Source: Guillardia theta CCMP2712 | Lineage: Eukaryota > Protista > Cryptophyta | DNA length: 51,940 nt | Reading direction: 5' to 3' | Assembly: GCF_000315625.1 (NCBI RefSeq) | Contig: NW_005434570.1 | Location: forward strand, 171,390 to 223,329 | In this document: positions 3,525 to 14,157 of the stretch, one piece after another | Position numbering within the stretch: the first letter of the stretch is position 1 | How the letters are laid out: each line of letters opens with the position of its first letter | The notes under the pieces: generated by a model | Seen by the model: the letters and a program-made list of their open reading frames with translations, nothing else | Database searches by the model: none | Told to the model about the DNA's origin: nothing | Program-made: the position numbers and the translations under genes

Positions 3525-5575
3525 ATGAGAAGAAGGTTGTGTGCGTGTGTGCTTTGGGTTGTAATCTTGGATGGCATGTACCAACAGGCTGAGGCGGCAA
3601 GCAGCGTGAGCTGCGGGAGCTGCACGTTTCTTGTCTCGGATGAGGGGTTGTTGTCGAGACAGGGGACCTGTGGCGGAGACTGTGGAACGGATGTAAACGG
3701 TCAAAAAACATTGTATCTGGGCTCGCTGGGTATTCGGAACATAACGAACGGGACTTTCGACGGGCTCTCGAGCTTACAGTATCTATATCTCTACGACAAC
3801 TACCTGGAGAGTCTTTCTGCAGGGACCTTCGACGGACTCTCGAGCTTGCAGATGCTATCTCTTGAATACAACTACCTGCAGAGTCTTGCTGCAGGGACCT
3901 TTCAAGGCCTCTCGAGCTTGCATTGGCTATATCTGTCCGACAACAAGCTGGAGAGTCTGCCTGCAGGAATCTTCCAAGGGCTCTCCAGCTTGCAGTATCT
4001 ATTTCTCTACTACAACAACCTGCAGAGTCTTCCTGCAGGGACCTTCGACGGACTCTCGAGCTTGCAGATGCTATCTCTTGAATACAACAACCTGCAGAGT
4101 CTTGCTGCAGGGACCTTTCAAGGCCTCTCGAGCTTGTATTGGCTATATCTTGACGACAACGTCATTGCTTGCATTTCCTCCCAGGCTTTTGCTGGTTTGT
4201 CTTCGCTTTCTTCTCTAGGCCTGACAGGCAACAATCTGCCGTGCTATCATCCGTCTTGGCCAAGCTTTGCCAGCAAGGACTCGAACCTCAAGCCTTGCCT
4301 CAACGAGACTCTTTGCAACAACAGCCGAGTCAGCACCTCCATCGCGACCTCCTTTGACCCGACCACAACCCCACCAGCATCCTCTTCCACAGCTGCCGAC
4401 ACCACCGCATCGCTGTCGCAACAGACCACTCTTGGTCCCTTCCTCCCTCCTACTACAACACCAACTGGTGTGGATCCAGACCAACCATTGCCGGCGGACG
4501 CGAACAAGAGCGCAGACCTCAAACCCATCGTCTGGTACAAATTCGATGACCCCAATGATCTGGGGAAAGACAGCAGCGGCAACGGCTACAACGCAACAAA
4601 CTACGGAGCTACATATGATGCTGGCACTAACTGTAAACAGGGGGATGGCTGTGCGCACTTCAGCGCAAGCGGGACCCAGCAGTACATGACAGTCGATAAC
4701 CGTTTGGATCTTGGTGCAATCCAGCAGAAAAGCGGCATCGCCGTCAGCTTCTGGGGCTACATGACGGGATCGAGTGGAAGTTGGGCGCGATACTTTGACT
4801 TTGGTGGGAGGAATAGCAACTACTCCTACCACGGTGGAGGCACGAACCTATACAACTGGTTGTTTGCCGCTCCAAGCACGGCAACGTACCCGAGCTGGCT
4901 TCAACTGGATGTGTACGACGGGAAGGGTTATTTTCCGTTGCGTTTTTCTGATCACGTGATCTCGAATTGGCATCACTTTGTTTTCTCCATCAACAAGAAC
5001 GGAAGCGCGTCGGCAAACACATGGTCGGTATGGATCGATAACGAGCTGGTGTGCGATGCGTGTCATGCTAGCGGTCTGACTTCCATTCCCATGGATGAAA
5101 GGGGATGGTATATTGCGCGTTCTCATTGGGAAGTAGACGGAAAGACTGATGGCGGCATGGACGACTTCCGTATTTACGATCAAGCCCTCACAGCCCTGCA
5201 AGTCGCAGAAATATACTACGATTCTGTGACACACGATCCTGCTTCAACCCCCTCCAAGTCAAACTGGTTTCTCCGCCCGGTCTACGTCAACTGCCAAATG
5301 AATCACACATGGGACGATATCATCCCCGGACTGTTGGCAAAGAACCAGACCTTCAAGTCCGGTGGACTCGGGAAGCTGATGAGGCTGAACGAGGTCGAGG
5401 TGTGGGTCTGCAGCTATCAAGACGAGTGTGCAAAGCCCAGCAATCCCTTCTGTTACGTCTTCGACGAGCAGCAGAAGCTCTTCATGCCATGGTGAGTTGT
5501 CACGGTTTATTGCAAGAGGTCATGGCACTGAAGCATTTCTACAGGGGGCTGGAGGATGAGCTCATCCTCAGCTAG
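3525..5575 (+). CDS. Secreted LRR protein copy 1: signal peptide, Cys-rich N-cap, 5 canonical 24-aa LRRs plus terminal repeats, Ser/Thr stalk, LamG/ConA-like domain, Cys-containing tail
   Basis: ORF 3474-5495; LxxLxLxxNxLxSLxAGTFxGLSS repeats; WYKFDD..KDSSGNG..MDDFRIYDQALT LamG signature; intron 5492-5544 adds final exon GLEDELILS* conserved in copy 2. Confidence 0.9.
3774..4205 (+). repeat. Six 72-bp LRR-coding tandem units with 216-bp higher-order periodicity
   Basis: Units 2 and 5 nearly identical (LQMLSLEYNxLQSLAAGTFQGLSS); units 3 and 6 share LxWLYLxDN. Confidence 0.9.
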
Positions 5576-6003: not shown

Positions 6004-7692
6004 CTGCATGTAGCCGTCGCCGCCCTATGCTCTTGCTTCCAAGGCTCCGTTGGTGAGGAGCGACGAAGATCGACGGAACAAGGTCAAGGGCATCAAGAAC
6101 GACCTGTGCTGAAAGCTAGAGTTGACATCGACGGCGATCGGGAACGATCCGCATGCTGAGGACGGGAAGGACAAGACTACCTCCCCGGCATCTTCCTTGT
6201 GGTCCACAGAGATGTTGGCTGGAGGGTCGAACCTCCAAGAGACCTGCTCGACGTCGGAGCAGCTGTCTACAGCAGCTGATGTCAAGCTCACCTGAAGCTT
6301 CTCCCCTGCCGACTCAACGATGAAGCCCCGCAACAGAGCAGGAGCGACGATGACGGGAGGAGGGTCGGAGATGACAATCACCGTGCTCTCTAGAGGAGAG
6401 ATCGTCTCAAGCGACCAGGGACGTGAAGGAGGAAGCCAAGACGCAGTGATGATGGACGAGTTCCTCCAAACGATCTTCTCGCTCAGACCTCCACTCAGCG
6501 TGATGAAGGAGTTTGTAGGGTTGTCAATGGCGGCAATGGTGGACGCCTTGTCGCTGCTGCAGTGCAGGGATATCATCAACGGATCGCAGCACAACATCTG
6601 TGATATGTCCGGGGGAGCAACTCGTTCTTGACCTTGGGTTGTAGGTCATTCCAGTCAGTCTCAGCGTCCTGGTCCGTATCGACTTGAGACTCGTCGGATC
6701 CGACCAGCAGCTCAGTCTCGTCTCCCAACCCATCGCCGTCGCCGTCTGCCAGTATGTACAACCCACTGAGCGAGACGGAGTAGGCACTGACGTAGTTCCT
6801 CAGCACCTTCACTCCGACTTTGACTCGACCAGGAAAGTAGAAATCCTTCACCCCTTGACTGTTGTATGTCAGCTCTGCCCACTTCAAGTCCCCAGGGTGC
6901 CACAAGAACCCACGGAGAATGTTTCTCCTCCTCTGCACGCGCAGCATGCCTGACTGCAGTCGCGGCGACAGAGAGCTCCCCTTCACCAACGTCCCGTTGT
7001 TGAGCTCAACCCACCTGCGCATGAACAGCTTCTTGTCACATGACACACACAACGCACCATGTCCGAAGAGGACTCACGTGTAATCAAGATCACTGTGCGT
7101 CTTCATGAACAGCCCAGGCTTGACAGATGAGATGTCGGTGTTGTCTTGGACCAGGACAATGCCCAGGATCGCCTGATAAGCGTGTGGCTGTAGAATGCTG
7201 TAATCGCAGAAGGCCAGCTCAACAACGAAGTCTCCCTCGTGCCAGCCCGACACAACGAACCCCTTCTCCACACCTGTTGTAGGCTTCAGCTCAAGGGCAT
7301 TCTCAAACTTTCTCTGTGGATGGTACGGGTGTCTACTGAGTCATCATCGGCCTTCTCACTTCAAAGCAGCAAGATATAGCACAGGCGATGAGGCATTCAA
7401 TGCTCTGAGCGCGTTGCTCACACATGCAGGCTCCATGCGGGACTTGCTCTCTAGATACATGATGGCTCGTTCTGGCAAAGGCAAGCTTACCCACGTTAGA
7501 CTCCAGCCTCAGACCGCATCCAGCGCTTGTTCTGTTGGGTTGATACCTCAGCGCATCTGCAGGAAGGTTGAGCAGCGCGTCTGTCTCGACATGGTCTTCG
7601 GTCAAGCGGTACAGTCGCTGTCCCTGAATGCACGTGGACCAACCCAGCAAGAAAACCAGCAAGAGGCTGCCAGCCTGGCCGCAGGGGAGCAT
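6004..7692 (-). pseudogene. Truncated duplicate (copy B) of the CBM-like gene
   Basis: Colinear with ~1263-2897; 1-nt deletion near 6619 splits the frame; GAT->TAG stop at 6025-6027; similarity ends abruptly at ~6004. Confidence 0.85.
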
Positions 7693-8109
7693 GCTCAGCG
7701 ACGTGTAGCCGCAGAGAGAGGAGCAGCGAGGTCGCTCAACCATCGACAACATCACTTCGTCTCCGAGCATCGGCCGTTGCCACATGCCCCTCGCCCTCCC
7801 TCTAGCCGGCACTGCCGCATCGGCATCGCCTGCATATCTACTTGATGGGAGGAAGCTACCCACCCCTTGTCAGTGTCAAGCTTCTGTCACCCCCTCTACT
7901 CCCTCGTACCTGCATGACCCCCTCAGTTGCCAATATTGAGACACTAATACCAGACATACCCGTTTCTCACAGACACCGACACCACCCCTTCACCCTCACC
8001 CCACCCCCCTCCGAGTCAAACACAGAGTTGACAGGAGAAGTGAGTTACATTGACTTTTTAGGCAGCAGACGGTTTTAGAGAGGTTAATGTAATTAATGAG
8101 ATTGACGGT

Positions 8110-8712
8110 GTACTGAGCTGGTTGCAAGTAAGCATGTATGTTTCCTGGAGGCTTATGCTCCAGGTTGAGGCGGAGGAGCTCAAGAGGATTTTCTCCACGT
8201 ATGGCGCATACAGTGCGGCAGTGAAGGGAACCCTATTCGAGTTGATGTCTTTCAAGGAGGTGCAACGGGGCTTGAGATTGACTTACCGCAGATTACATAG
8301 CAGACCAATTAAGGCTCAGCCTTGGGAACCTTGTAGCGTTGTGTTCTTTGATCCGCTGCAACTCAAGCCTTCTCTCCCCAGCACTGCAGTATGCTTCAGA
8401 CCGATCAGCGAGCTTCAAGGAGGATATGATGCTGTGATTGTTGACAAGGATGCGAAAAGGGCAGTGTTTGTGCAGGCAACCGTGGCCAGGAAGCCCAGTC
8501 TGAAGCTTTCGTTCTTCTTGGATAATCTAATGGCCCTCGGGATTTCTGCAGGTCTTGTGTGGAGGGTGGAGATCATCTTTCTCATTCCACGAGAGAGGAT
8601 GCCGGTGTTCCGGATAAGTCCTGTCGAAGACTGCGGGGCGCTGAAGACATACGGATGGAAGAAAGGCAAGGAAAGGAGGCAGGCGAAGGTTGCGTGCCTA
8701 ACTTTGCACTGA
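8110..8712 (+). pseudogene. 5'-truncated Crinkler/RHS-type PD-(D/E)xK restriction-endonuclease-fold domain
   Basis: Motifs VASK(fs)YVSWRL, GTLFE, RP..ELQGGYDAVIV, FVQATVARKPSLK resemble the CR-REase pattern (G.xFE, P...xQ.GYDA, FxQxT....H.LK); ATGT duplication at ~8134-8141 frameshifts the 5' part; no upstream NTPase. Confidence 0.6.
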
Positions 8713-8722
8713 AAAGGAATCC

Positions 8723-8751
8723 AAGCAAAGCAAAGCAAAGCAAAGCAAAGC
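8723..8751 (+). repeat. (AAAGC)n pentamer run just after the REase stop
   Basis: aagcaaagcaaagcaaagcaaagcaaagc. Confidence 0.9.
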
Positions 8752-9760
8752 TATTTCAATCATACAAACACTGAGATACAAGACGATTCATGAGAATCTT
8801 CAAAAAGATCTCGTGCCAAGTAAGACGATCTGGTCAAAACGCACATCATCCTTCCCGTTGTATGACTAAAACTCAAAGTTTTTCTCAGTCAATCCTTCTC
8901 AGCCTCCTTGTGCTGCTCCATGCAGCCTCATAAAAAAAGCAAGATGATCTATGTTAGAAATGACTGCTAGCGAGGTGATCAATTTGATAGATAGAGTGTT
9001 GGGAAGCATGCCTGGCTATTTGCGAGAACAGCGAATATTGAAAATTAGATGTTTTTGCTTTTTGTCTTGTTTTTTTTCAATTTTCCCATTTGTTCTCTGT
9101 TTCCTTGTTTGAAGGTGCTCTCCCTCGTTCCCGAAGGTTGCGCCAGTGTACAACAACACTCCACTCGTTCATGTCCAGCTGAGCATCACCCAGGGGCACC
9201 TTGGTCAAGCACCCGCTCTCTCAGGAAAGTATGCTGCTCCAAGAAGGCTTATCGGAAATCATGTCGACCTTAGCTGCAACAAGACAGTTTTTGCTCAAGA
9301 CCAAGTTTAATGCACACAACTGAAACAAGGATTGAGGAGCACATGAGAGATAGATTGTATGCTAGAATATAAGCCCTCCTCTTCGTCTCTGCGCCGCTAC
9401 ATGGCTGTGTATTGTTGATGCTATATCTGATAACATTGAAGACAAGGGTACCACTATGACTGCATGTTTGTGACCCTCGCATATTAGCTACTGGCATGCA
9501 GCCATGGATAGCTGCGCACAATGGGAACGGAAGGATGACCTACTGGATCGGATGATGTTCGTTGTGTCGTAGAGGTGCTCGCTGCCTCCTGCTCCTTGGG
9601 GTATCTCGGAGAGGCGGGCTTGTCGATCAGTGCTTTTCTCTTTCTCGTTCGCTGTTGTTTGTGCCTTCCACTTAAGTAATTATATCAGTCAAGCCTCTCC
9701 TACCTGCTAGTCAGTCAGTTGGGGTGGATTTACATGCATATGCGGAGTGAGGGAGTGAGC

Positions 9761-12700
9761 ATGAGGAGGCTGTTGTGTGCGTGTGTGCTTTGGCTTGTAG
9801 TCTTGGATGGCATGTACCAGCAGGCTGAGGCGGCAAGCAGCGAGAGCTGCGGGAGCTGCACGTTTCTTATCTCGGATGAGGGGTTGTTGTCGAGGCAGGG
9901 GACCTGTGGCGGAGATTGTGGAACTGATTTTTATGGTTCCAAAAGATTTTATCTGAACTCCCGGGGTATACGGAACATAACGAACGGGACCTTCGACGGG
10001 CTGTCCAGCTTGCAGTATCTATATCTTTACAACAACAACCTGCAGAGTCTGCCTGCAGGGACCTTCCAAGGGCTCTCCAGCTTGCAGACGCTATATCTTT
10101 CCAGCAACAAACTGCAGAGTCTGCCAGCAGGGACCTTCCAAGGGCTCTCCAGCTTGCAGCGGCTATATCTTGCCGGCAACAACCTGCAGAGTCTGCCTGC
10201 AGGGACCTTCCAAGGGCTCTCCAGCTTGCAGTTTCTATATCTTGCCGGCAACAACCTGCAGAACCTTTCTGCAGGGACCTTCCAAGGGCTCTCCAGCTTG
10301 CAGGGGCTATATCTTTACTACAACAACCTTCAGAGTCTGCCTTCAGGGACTTTCCAAGGGCTCTCCAGCTTGCAGTATCTATATCTTGACTACAACAACC
10401 TGCAGAACCTTTCTGCAGGGACCTTCCAAGGGCTCTCCAGCTTGCAGTTTCTATTTCTTTCCTACAACAACCTTCAGAGTCTGCCTTCAGGGACCTTCCA
10501 AGGGCTCTCCAGCTTGCAGTATCTATATCTTGACTACAACAACCTGCAGAGTCTGCCAGCAGGGACCTTCCAAGGGCTCTCCAGCTTGAAGCGGCTATAT
10601 CTTTCCTACAACAACCTGCAGAGTCTGCCTGCAGGGACCTTCCAAGGGCTCTCCAGCTTGCAGTATCTATATCTTGACAACAACAACGAACTGCAGAGTC
10701 TGCCTGCAGGGACCTTCCAAGGGCTCTCCAGCTTGCAGTATCTATATCTTGACTACAACAAACTGCAGAGTCTGCCAGCAGGGACCTTCCAAGGGCTCTC
10801 CAGCTTGCAGTATCTATATCTTGACTACAACAAACTGCAGAGTCTGCCTGCAGGGACCTTCGACGGGCTCTCCAGCTTGCAGTATCTATATCTTTACAAC
10901 AACGAACTGCAGAACCTTTCTGCAGGGACCTTCGACGGGCTCTCCAGCTTGCAGTATCTATATCTTCACAACAACAACCTTCAGAACCTTTCTGCAGGGA
11001 CCTTCGACGGGTTCTCCAGCTTGCAGCGGCTATATCTTTACAACAACAACCTGCAGAGTCTGCCTTCAGGGACCTTCGACGGGCTCTCCAGCTTGCAGTA
11101 TCTATATCTTTCCAGCAACAACCTGCAGAGTCTGCCAGCAGGGACCTTCGACGGGCTCTCCAGCTTGCAGACGCTATATCTTTCCTACAACAACTTGCAG
11201 AGTCTGCCTGCAGGGACCTTCCAAGGGCTCTCCAGCTTGCAGACGCTATATCTTGACTACAACAAACTGCAGAGTCTGCCAGCAGGGACCTTCCAAGGGC
11301 TCTCCAGCTTGCGGTATCTATATCTTGACTACAACAAACTGCAGAGTCTGCCTGCAGGGACCTTCGACGGGCTCTCCAGCTTGCAGTATCTATATCTTGA
11401 CTACAACAAACTGCAGAGTCTGCCAGCAGGGACCTTCGACGGGCTCTCCAGCTTGCAGGTGCTTTTTCTTTCCTACAACAACCTGCAGAGTCTGCCTGCA
11501 GGGACCTTCGACGGGCTCTCCAGCTTGCAGTATCTATATCTCAACTACAACCGTTTTGCTTGCATTTCCTCCCAAGCTTTTGCTGGTTTGTCTTCACTTT
11601 CTTTTTTACTGCTTCAAGGCAACAATCTGCCGTGCTATCATCCGTCTTGGCCAAGCTTTGTTAGCAAGGACCCGAATCTCGAGCCTTGCCTCAACGAGAC
11701 TCTATGCGACTACAGCCCAGACAGCACCTCCATCGCAACCTCCTTCATCCCAACCACAACCCCACCAGCATCCTCTTCCACAGCTGCCGACACCACCGCA
11801 TCGCTGTCGCAACAAACCACTGTCGGTCCCTTCCTCCCAACCACAACACCAACTGGTGTGGATCCGACCAGACCAACCACTACCGGTGGACAAGAACAAG
11901 AGCGCAGACCTCAAACCCATCGTCTGGTACAAGTTCGATGACCCCAATGATTTGGGGAAAGACAGCAGCGGCAACGGCTACAACGCAACAAACTACGGAG
12001 CTACATATGATTCTGGCACAAACTGTAAACAGGGGGATGGCTGTGCGCACTTCAGCGCAAGCGGGACCCAGCAGTACATGACAGTGGACAACCGTTTGGA
12101 TCTTGGTACAATCCAGCAGAAGAGCGGCATCGCCGTCAGCTTCTGGGGCTACATGACGGGAGCGAGTGGAAGTTGGGCTCGCTACTTTGACTTTGGTGGG
12201 AATAGCAACTACTTTTACCACGGTGGAGGCTCAAACCTATACAACTGGTTGTTCGCCGCTCCAGGCACGTCAACGTGGCCGAGATGGCTTCAACTGGATG
12301 TGTACGACGGCAAAGGTTATTTTCCGTTGCCTTTTTCTGATCACGTGATCTCGAGTTGGCATCACTTTGTTTTCTCCATCAACAAGAACGGAAGCGCGTC
12401 GGCAAACACATGGTCGGTATGGATCGATAACGAGCTGGTGTGCGATGCGTGTCATGCTAGCGGTCTGACTTCCATTCCCATGGATGAAAGGGGATGGTAT
12501 ATTGCGCGTTCTCATTGGGAAGTAGACGGAAAGACTGATGGCGGCATGGACGACTTCCGTATTTACGATCAAGCCCTCACAGCCCTGCAAGTCGCGGAAA
12601 TATACTACGGTTCTGTGATTGACAATCCTGCTTCAACCCCCTTGGGGCCAAACTGGTTTCTTCACCCAGTCTACGTCAACTGCCATATGAATCACACATG

Positions 12701-12980
12701 GAAAGATATCATCTACGGACAATTGGCAAAGAACCAGACCTTCAAGTCGGGTGGACTCGGGAAGCTGATGACTCGAGGCGAGTACGAGGTGTGGGTCTGC
12801 AGCTATCAAGACGAGTGTGCAAAGCCCAGCAATCCCTTCTGTTACGTCTTCGACGAGCAGCAGAAGCTGTTCATCCCATGGTGAGTTGTCACGGTGTCTC
12901 TGAGAGTGATTGCAAGAGGTCCGATCAGGGCTCTGAAGCATTTCTGCAGGGGGCTGGAAGATGAGCTCATGCTCAGTTAG
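9761..12980 (+). CDS. Secreted LRR protein copy 2: same architecture as copy 1 with 21 canonical LRRs; apparent frameshift at ~11866 that a 46-nt intron (11826-11871) would remove
   Basis: ORF 9719-11941 (LRRs) and ORF ending 12884 (LamG); final exon GLEDELMLS* after GTGAGT..CTGCAG intron. Confidence 0.85.
10010..11596 (+). repeat. Array of 22 72-bp LRR-coding units (21 canonical + terminal; unit 10 has an extra AAC codon)
   Basis: Consensus TTGCAG NNN CTATATCTT NNC NNC AAC AAM CTGCAGAGTCTGCCWGCAGGGACCTTC(CAA/GAC)GGGCTCTCCAGC. Confidence 0.95.
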
Positions 12981-14157
12981 ATACGGTGATAGCCTCGCGG
13001 CACTGTTCAACGGTTCAACGGTTTGAAGACGACTCGAGCTACTTTCATGTTCAAGTTCTGTCTTTGTGTATCAAACTTGAAATGGTTTTGTTTTAGTAGT
13101 ATCCTGAGGCTCGGATTTACGAAGCCTGCCAAAGTTCGTGCCGGGCCCTGACTCACCGACCGTACTCCGTACCCACGCCACCGTCCGACGGGAAGGACCG
13201 TGCAATAAGGTCACGGCGGGCCCCCGGCGCGGCTTGCCGCAGTGCGGCGACGCACTGAGATTTGTTGAGATCAAGTCTGCCTCAGAGTTTTGACTGGAGG
13301 CCCCAAAATAGACTTCTTCATGAAATTTGTTTTTGCACATTAATGAAAAGGAGTGTTTTCAGATTAAAGAACTACGCCTCTACGTGCTGTACCCCCCACC
13401 CCTCATCTATACGAAAGCACCCCTCCCGATATTCATTGCTACATCCCCTCGATAAAATATTTCTACTCACACTTTTCCCTGCTAGTCCCCGGACAAATGC
13501 ATGGCTTACACCTCCAACAGGATAGAATCTTTAAGTAGATCCATAGGTAAAAATGTAGCTCCTGATACCCCGTCGCTTTCAGACCCCTCTACTCAATACC
13601 TCGTCTTTCACAACACCCTACCCCCTCTACATCTTTCAACCCACGGAAGTTAGCAGAAAAAATATATTATCATTTGTAGTCTTCAGGGTCGTTGTATAAA
13701 TTTGTAACATAGGCTATGAGAAAAGGTCACAAAAGTATCAATAAACTATAGATTTGTTCTTGAATTACCATAAATTAATAGTATTTATAGTAAATACCTT
13801 GGAACAAAGGGTACCCTTGTCTTGTGGGGGAAAGGAGGAATGCAGTAGTGCAGAAGGCAAGTAGCGCTAGGAAAGTTTGTATAGGGCGACAGGACACGAG
13901 CAGGCAATCTTGACGAGCTCGTGTCTGAAAGCTAGAACCATTGTGAGCGCAGAGATGCACACAAGTTCAACAGAGCTCTCTGAAAGCGAGTGATTGTGAA
14001 GGAAAGAGTTGTTGAATCCTTTTCTTGGTTGCACTAAATATTAGGAGAAACTTTTGGCTCACGTGCATAGATGATAACAAAATTTGGATGGGCAGAGATT
14101 CCACTCACTGAAATTCAATATTTTAACAGGTGGGATCTTCTTGGGCACTTGTAGAGG

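Follow-up and report, generated by a model that had tools for sequence, protein, structure and literature searches.

Whether a unicellular alga may diversify a surface receptor in the manner of the variable lymphocyte receptors (VLRs) of lampreys and hagfish is the question raised by a leucine-rich repeat (LRR) gene of the cryptophyte Guillardia theta CCMP2712. The gene, here the target gene, lies on the forward strand at positions 9761 to 12980 of a 51,940-nucleotide stretch of contig NW_005434570.1 (assembly GCF_000315625.1, positions 171,390 to 223,329), referred to below as the window, and carries an array of 21 near-uniform 72-bp modules that differ mainly at a few codons. The first-pass annotation of this sequence had read it as a VLR-like, recombination-diversified receptor. 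The analysis described here points to a different answer, namely that the gene is probably inherited and fast-evolving, one of a family of extracellular LRR proteins specific to cryptophytes, and its array a coding minisatellite under diversifying selection. The signature on which this answer is built, diversifying selection at concave sites combined with recombination, is real and family-wide.

A single open frame of 726 codons (9761-11941, forward strand) runs from the signal peptide through the stalk, and its translation agrees with the order of parts proposed earlier (signal peptide, N-cap, 24-aa LRRs, C-cap and Thr/Ser/Pro stalk). These parts are as follows.

9761..9832, forward strand: signal peptide of 24 aa (MRR, hydrophobic core, AEA/AS cleavage), from the translation; the N-terminus is kept in paralogues.
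9833..10009, forward strand: family-specific 4-Cys N-cap (SCGSC...C...C) and first partial LRR, with 53 matches in the own genome.
10010..11524, forward strand: 21 canonical 72-bp (24-aa) LRR modules, in frame (Pfam LRR_8, E 6.3e-186).
10658..10732, forward strand: module 10, of 25 aa, with one additional AAC codon.
11525..11596, forward strand: degenerate last LRR, module 22 (LQYLYLNYNRFACISS...), kept among family members.
11597..11707, forward strand: 4-Cys, Cys-rich C-cap (NNLPCYHPSWP...C...C), aligning loosely to the LRRCT of the IGFBP acid-labile subunit.
11708..11863, forward strand: Thr/Ser/Pro-rich stalk, from the translation, with 95% nucleotide identity to the paralogue.

The array and caps are uninterrupted by introns, the sole intron detected being that at 12881-12949. 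Tandem Repeats Finder reports a 72-bp period with 21.7 copies and 89% matches over 9986-11551, and the LRR_8 profile matches the array in 12 stretches, in which the motif LxxLxLxxNxLxxLPxxxFxxL recurs. Two ATGs in frame at 9734 and 9740 could provide a longer N-region of the signal peptide. The extra AAC of module 10 stands within an AAC run (D-N-N-N-E), has the appearance of slippage and would extend the loop behind the beta-strand.

The N-cap gives no match to Pfam LRRNT, and the two caps match neither Pfam LRRNT nor LRRCT; in an AlphaFold2 (AF2) model of a paralogue the N-cap folds as a two-strand hairpin cap (pLDDT 92). The closest solved sequences are those of the IGFBP acid-labile subunit, LRIG1, LRRTM, the Nogo receptor and LGR4/5 (E 1e-69 to 1e-44), with VLRA lower in the list. 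The AF2 model of the paralogue ectodomain, which has 6 modules and not the 21 of the target, reaches pLDDT 92 with a strand every 24 residues, and its fold is matched about equally by the Nogo receptor, VLR-based repebodies and LRRTM2 (TM 0.65-0.76). By its motif and by the curved, capped solenoid of the model, the predicted protein is of the 'typical' 24-residue extracellular LRR class. Animal capped LRR proteins (Nogo receptor, IGFBP acid-labile subunit, LRRTM, LRIG1, LGR4/5) share the 24-residue LxxLxLxxNxLxxLPxGxFxGL motif, but their repeats are individually diverged and conserved across species, without a homogenised array and in another domain context. The near-ideal consensus array with its Tyr-rich variable face resembles engineered repebody scaffolds.

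Variation among the 21 modules is not evenly spread. Amino-acid entropy is highest at codons 3 (2.09 bits), 7 (2.06), 8 (1.57) and 10 (1.14), followed by codon 20 (Q or D, 0.97 bits) and then by codons 13-16 (SLPA/NLSA/SLPS), and half of the codons (12 of 24) are invariant even at the DNA level. The first-pass annotation had centred the variation on codons 3, 7, 8 and 10, in agreement with these values, and the residues that it listed are all correct, the pair NY coming from the degenerate module 22. The scaffold that it called frozen is indeed near-uniform but not wholly frozen, as synonymous differences occur at codons 4, 11, 14, 15 and 18 (pS 0.11). In the AF2 model of the paralogue ectodomain the beta-strands fall at module positions 3-5, and positions 3, 7, 8 and 10 therefore lie on or just past the concave strand, where the earlier reading had placed them. 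In LRRs such positions are established to stand on or beside the concave beta-strand.

Nonsynonymous and synonymous differences per site (pN and pS) were estimated by pooled Nei-Gojobori counting over every module pair, with bootstrap resampling of modules. Codons 3, 7, 8 and 10 show pN 0.41 and pS 0.16, and the remaining 20 codons, taken as the scaffold, pN 0.053 and pS 0.106 (pN/pS 0.5); at codons 7, 8 and 10 pS is 0 and pN 0.25-0.44. The comparison of dN with dS that had been proposed as a check thus puts pN at the concave codons above the synonymous rate, the ratio of concave pN to scaffold pS being 3.9 (bootstrap 2.75-5.88). Of the 10626 ways of choosing four codons, just 3 reach the summed pN of codons 3, 7, 8 and 10. 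High pN is seen on the convex side too, at codon 20 (0.37), and position 5, which is equally exposed, is restricted to Tyr or Phe; of the 100 residues at positions 3, 5, 7, 8 and 10, 44 are Tyr. The NNC codons are the expected remnant of nonsynonymous-only change over a short time. Adenine mutagenesis of the kind driven by diversity-generating retroelements was considered as their source and rejected, because the variable columns include some whose consensus base is not A (T.T in codon 3, and the first base in codons 7 and 8), and because no module differs at the adenines of codons 9 (AAC) and 12 (CAG), both of which are invariant.

Of the 21 modules, 20 are distinct, and the segments that vary (five in all: codon 3, codons 7-8, codon 10, codons 13-16 and codon 20) show no more association with one another than after random shuffling. 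The four-gamete test finds every combination in 101 of 171 informative column pairs inside 72 bp; therefore, recombination or conversion between modules, or recurrent mutation, scrambled the segments. Both results agree with the free combination of segments and the module mosaicism described in the first-pass annotation, and the sub-module mosaic upholds its claim of diversification by recombination in the sense of recombination among modules over evolutionary time. Along the array, modules with Q and modules with D at codon 20 form runs, as local exchange would leave them. Four-module blocks share 88-91% identity with other blocks of the array, against 84% with the tandem paralogue and 80-81% with the genes on C19 and C29; as identity is highest inside its own array, the array expanded in place. 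Scaffold pS among modules (0.11) is similar to the dS of the flanks between the target and its paralogue (0.12-0.29), so that the age of the array is close to that of the tandem gene duplication, without constant turnover.

The same signature was found in other members of the family. Searches of the own genome covered 87.1 Mb in 669 contigs and gave 108 matches to the LRR part on more than 40 contigs and 53 matches to the family-specific N-cap, so the search for further members that had been suggested earlier did uncover a large family. The members used for comparison are listed below.

3525..5495, forward strand of the window: intact tandem paralogue with 6 LRR modules, and with N-cap, C-cap, stalk, LamG domain and C-terminal domain in one frame.
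C226 gene: 28 canonical modules; concave pN / scaffold pS 2.7.
C29 gene: 15 canonical modules; concave pN / scaffold pS 4.8.
C5 gene: 12 canonical modules (48-aa double unit); concave pN / scaffold pS 2.9.

The C226, C29 and C5 arrays are each homogenised to their own consensus, with an excess of replacements at positions 3, 5, 7, 8 and 10. An N-cap search of a set of 5.8 billion proteins, restricted by a length filter and a word index, returned one G. theta protein only, and no description of this cryptophyte LRR family was found in the literature.

With lamprey and hagfish VLRA, VLRB and VLRC the target shares a signal peptide, a Cys-containing N-cap, 24-aa LRRs, a Cys-containing C-cap, a Thr/Pro stalk and variation of the concave strand. 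The differences concern how the gene is inherited and how the protein ends. VLR genes are inherited incomplete, their 5' and 3' coding pieces being separated by a non-coding insert, whereas the target is continuous over 726 codons; VLRs have few modules, and the target has 21; the VLR stalk leads to a glycosylphosphatidylinositol (GPI) signal, while that of the target leads to a frameshifted tail and a stop, with no GPI signal. In the intact relatives the stalk is followed by the LamG domain and the C-terminal domain, with a hydrophilic end (...PWGLEDELMLS) that is not a GPI signal. DNA searches of the own genome revealed no bank of donor cassettes, identity of at least 88% being confined to the array and the weaker matches all falling within complete paralogues that bear N- and C-caps; VLR-type donor cassettes were accordingly rejected as a source of the diversity. 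APOBEC_N (PF08210) had no match in the 87-Mb genome, although this was a weak test, made with one profile in a six-frame, exon-by-exon search. With a gene inherited complete, no cassette bank, no APOBEC_N match and an RNA contig equal to the genome where it can be read, the VLR-like mechanism put forward at first is not supported. The likeness to VLRs is one of shared LRR class and convergent layout, not of membership.

Downstream of the stalk the reading frame of the target is broken, as seen from the following features.

11864..11867 (about), forward strand: 4-bp insertion shifting the frame by +1, from alignment to both intact LRR-LamG paralogues.
11939..11941, forward strand: premature TGA in the LRR frame, behind a 25-aa out-of-frame tail, from the translation.
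12063..12596, forward strand: LamG / concanavalin-A-like domain in the other frame, which is open from about 11868 (Pfam Laminin_G_3, E 2e-11).
12648..12880, forward strand: Cys-rich C-terminal domain (CTD) of about 75 aa in the LamG frame, a tail common to most of the family.
12881..12949, forward strand: 69-nt GT..AG intron, absent from the X1 contig and present in DNA contigs.
12950..12980, forward strand: terminal micro-exon (W)GLEDELMLS and stop, in the LamG/CTD frame; the tail is also found in GUITHDRAFT_116768 and A0A7S4K4D9.

The 4-bp insertion is genuine, and the C19 copy lacks it, as does the tandem paralogue. An assembly error was ruled out by DNA contigs from two further runs, X11 and X12 (2011, 2021), which cover 11785-11923 gap-free with the insertion included. 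The X1 contig (1662 nt, depth 132) spans 11631-12879 with zero mismatches or gaps; since the 69-nt intron is removed in X1 and retained in the DNA contigs, X1 represents RNA, and the gene is transcribed and spliced. Rescue of the frame by an intron was likewise ruled out, as nothing is spliced near 11864 in this contig. Two raw X24 RNA reads show the 69-nt intron spliced as well. The RNA (2018) and DNA (2011, 2021) contigs match the assembly from the last two modules through the 3' part. The LamG/CTD frame is stop-free over 326 codons and the LamG domain shows dN/dS 0.40 against the paralogue, therefore the frameshift is recent. The Laminin_G_3 match spans positions 2-151 of the 151 of the profile; the AF2 model of LamG plus CTD is poor (pLDDT 51), and the LamG fold is putative. 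The transcribed gene encodes either a 726-aa LRR and stalk protein without the family tail, or it is a young pseudogene. The first-pass annotation had regarded a constant LamG domain as a replacement of the GPI anchor, a view contradicted by the position of the LamG of the target, out of frame past a premature stop, and by the fact that only three family genes combine LRRs with LamG, the other two being intact.

Some further observations concern this 3' part. The intron splits the last Trp codon behind its second base, and micro-exon tails of the same kind (GLQEDLMLS, GLEDELMLRKEDR) close other CTD-bearing G. theta proteins. A public protein model, P0015 (249 aa; 12078-13030), begins at an internal Met of the LamG frame and joins ...KSGG to another frame of the last exon; it evidently reflects an annotation broken by the frameshift, or else an alternative splice. 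No contigs encoding P0015 were found among environmental and strain data, and a metagenome scan returned only remote LamG relatives of 24-28% identity. A share of 0.34 of the words of 11520-13000 is present in a run labelled as freshwater metagenome (X16, 2023), which may contain a relative or contamination.

The following course of events would account for the array. It probably expanded within the target gene from one or few modules, and unequal crossing-over together with short-tract gene conversion between modules would reshuffle it; such exchange would keep the structural scaffold near-uniform and yield sub-module mosaics. Diversifying selection has probably driven replacements at the solvent-exposed positions 3, 7, 8 and 10, the outcome being a long concave face rich in Tyr, Asp, Ser and Asn with nearly every module different. 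The ligand of the protein may be extracellular and variable, for example a microbe, a virus, a mating partner or a cue from prey or grazers. The LamG and CTD of the target copy have been thrown out of frame by the recent insertion of 4 bp within its stalk. We infer the recombination mechanism, the secretion and the role in ligand recognition; of the secreted recognition system that was earlier attributed to a unicellular alga, the secreted-type capped LRR layout stands, and recognition is carried forward as a proposal.

Several points weigh against the view of an inherited minisatellite under diversifying selection. Module number and order come from one assembly, short-read contigs breaking within the array, and the sampled 31-mers of the array (9761-11640) are present at 0.10-0.39 in indexed runs vs 0.95 for the adjoining unique 3' part. 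Pooled pairwise Nei-Gojobori counting is crude for 72-nt recombining repeats; if short-tract conversion evens out the scaffold more quickly than it does the variable codons, scaffold pS underestimates age, and the excess pN could represent old diversity that has been maintained and not recent positive selection, although selection for diversity follows in either case. The target copy, furthermore, may have lost its function through the frameshift. In principle, cultures might differ in the array, which would explain why so few of its 31-mers are recovered, and such differences would be expected from a programmed system in which vegetative rearrangement by directed conversion from donor cassettes, as in VLRs or antigenic variation, gives each clone its own receptor. 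Such a system would also explain the VLR-like layout and variable positions, and the sub-module mosaic is the expected trace of repeated conversion. It is nevertheless scarcely credible, as the inherited gene is complete and open from signal peptide to stalk, neither donor cassettes nor (by the weak test described) APOBEC_N turned up in the genome, RNA and DNA contigs obtained years apart agree with the assembly where they can be compared, scaffold pS indicates an age near that of the gene duplication and not constant turnover, and the low 31-mer share is probably technical, since repeats yield short unitigs of 44-58 nt. Relaxed constraint in a structural or adhesive surface protein without diversified specificity is improbable, if less so. 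In LRR proteins generally, constraint is weakest at the x positions of LxxLxLxxNxL, scaffold pN/pS of 0.5 indicates that overall constraint is not strong, and codon 20 on the convex side varies too; neutral sites, however, cannot exceed the synonymous rate, whereas pN at codons 7, 8 and 10 is 0.25-0.44, against a pS of 0 there and of 0.11 in the scaffold. Even at its lower bootstrap bound the ratio is 2.75, the excess is repeated in three further arrays, and the retention of Tyr or Phe at the exposed position 5 speaks for a face that is selected and not drifting.

Two other alternatives leave the evolution of the array as it is and concern the state or the task of the protein. The target copy may be a young pseudogene whose array pattern was laid down in a functional ancestor and whose mRNA is non-productive; this is doubtful, yet it is the most plausible of the alternatives. 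The premature stop precedes the last intron by 939 nt, LamG and CTD cannot be translated, and both other LRR-LamG genes are intact. On the other side stand the LRR frame of 726 codons and the LamG/CTD frame of 326 codons, both still stop-free, a transcript that assembles at depth 132 in X1 and an LRR and stalk product that could act as a soluble form; in any case this alternative bears only on the present state of the target copy and not on the nature of the array. It is also conceivable, but rather unlikely, that the same evolution served gamete or mating-type recognition or cell adhesion and not defence. Reproductive recognition proteins are likewise under diversifying selection, and nothing at the locus suggests immune signalling, most members having the CTD or a short cytoplasmic tail and no signalling domain; about 50 paralogues with widely differing array lengths suit a repertoire better than a mating pair. 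A bolder extension, which we consider very unlikely, is that the homogenised arrays are contingency loci in which frequent mitotic unequal exchange between 72-bp modules gives rise to sub-clones with new module orders and newly combined concave-face segments. If this were so, a clonal population would hold a standing repertoire of binding surfaces, a unicellular and intragenic counterpart of VLRs and antigenic variation for which no donor cassettes would be required.

Among other systems, the nearest precedent so far described is provided by the LRR-ROCO genes of the alga Ectocarpus, in which 72-nt (24-aa) LRR units are duplicated and shuffled, with positive selection on concave residues (Zambounis et al., 2012, PMC3341825). 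The two cases share the 72-nt units, the concave selection and a proposed fast-evolving recognition repertoire; the Ectocarpus genes carry one LRR per exon and encode cytoplasmic ROCO GTPases, whereas the array of the target sits in one exon of a secreted or membrane-anchored family with no signalling domain. Ectocarpus is a stramenopile and Guillardia a cryptophyte, that is, they belong to unrelated lineages, and the family described here would represent a second, independent algal case, based on intronless coding minisatellites instead of shuffled exons. Plant LRR receptor-like proteins and R genes (Cf-4/Cf-9, Xa21) form inherited, clustered families of extracellular LRRs with hypervariable xxLxLxx positions under diversifying selection, and repeat number in plant LRR genes shifts by unequal crossing-over. 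They differ in their own LRR subtype and caps, in the presence of a transmembrane segment and/or kinase, and in repeats that are far more diverged within a gene than those of the target. The FLO/ALS adhesins of yeast are secreted surface proteins with in-frame tandem repeats whose number and order shift by recombination; their repeats are mostly disordered Ser/Thr spacers, while each repeat of the target makes up one turn of an LRR fold, in which the contact residues vary under selection. To our knowledge, nothing is known of how cryptophytes, or most unicellular algae, recognize microbes, viruses, grazers or mates, and about 50 secreted or membrane LRR genes, with the signature replicated in at least four of them, constitute a candidate recognition repertoire.

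The family members differ in what follows the stalk, which is mucin-like. In most of them the Cys-rich CTD of about 75 aa comes directly after it, and others have a transmembrane segment and a short conserved tail. The CTD, for which Pfam holds no model, has the pattern W.LHP.Y..C ... SGGLGK ... EVWVCS..D.CA.P...FCYVFDE...F.PW and occurs also on C123, C48, C83, C10, C97, C29, C249 and others; it is terminal as well in TIG, ephrin-receptor-like and subtilase proteins of Guillardia, Hanusia phi and Rhodomonas, with 254 representative clusters at E<=0.001, and could be a cryptophyte surface-anchoring or sorting domain. The transmembrane members L005 (C13:982921-987360), L009 (C82) and L027 (C89) have short cytoplasmic tails, of which those of C13 and C82 end in a common motif, F/S-K-[VI]-L..W[ML].REHK.P..RR, that could serve in sorting or signalling. 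Higher-order repeats are seen in two members: in L005 of C13 an identical module pair occurs four times at a spacing of 72 aa, and in L003 of C5 two module types (SLPAGAFQGL and SLERGSFDGL) alternate as a 48-aa unit.

As regards the genomic neighbourhood, at least five family members lie on C249, some with internal stops. A third member, with a 420-aa open frame, was located on the contig of the target about 20 kb upstream of the window (C104:151391-151960), and the locus therefore belongs to a small cluster. A scan for bacterial promoters and terminators upstream of the gene gave nothing, which is of no relevance in a eukaryote. Pfam assigned no family to the open reading frames (ORFs) at 1085-2990 and 6025-7863 or to 8122-8712. 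Both LRR-LamG genes of the window are preceded head to head by ORFs, 1085-2990 and 6025-7863 on the reverse strand, and about 1.5 kb of additional sequence (8071-9560) keeps the two partners of the second pair apart.

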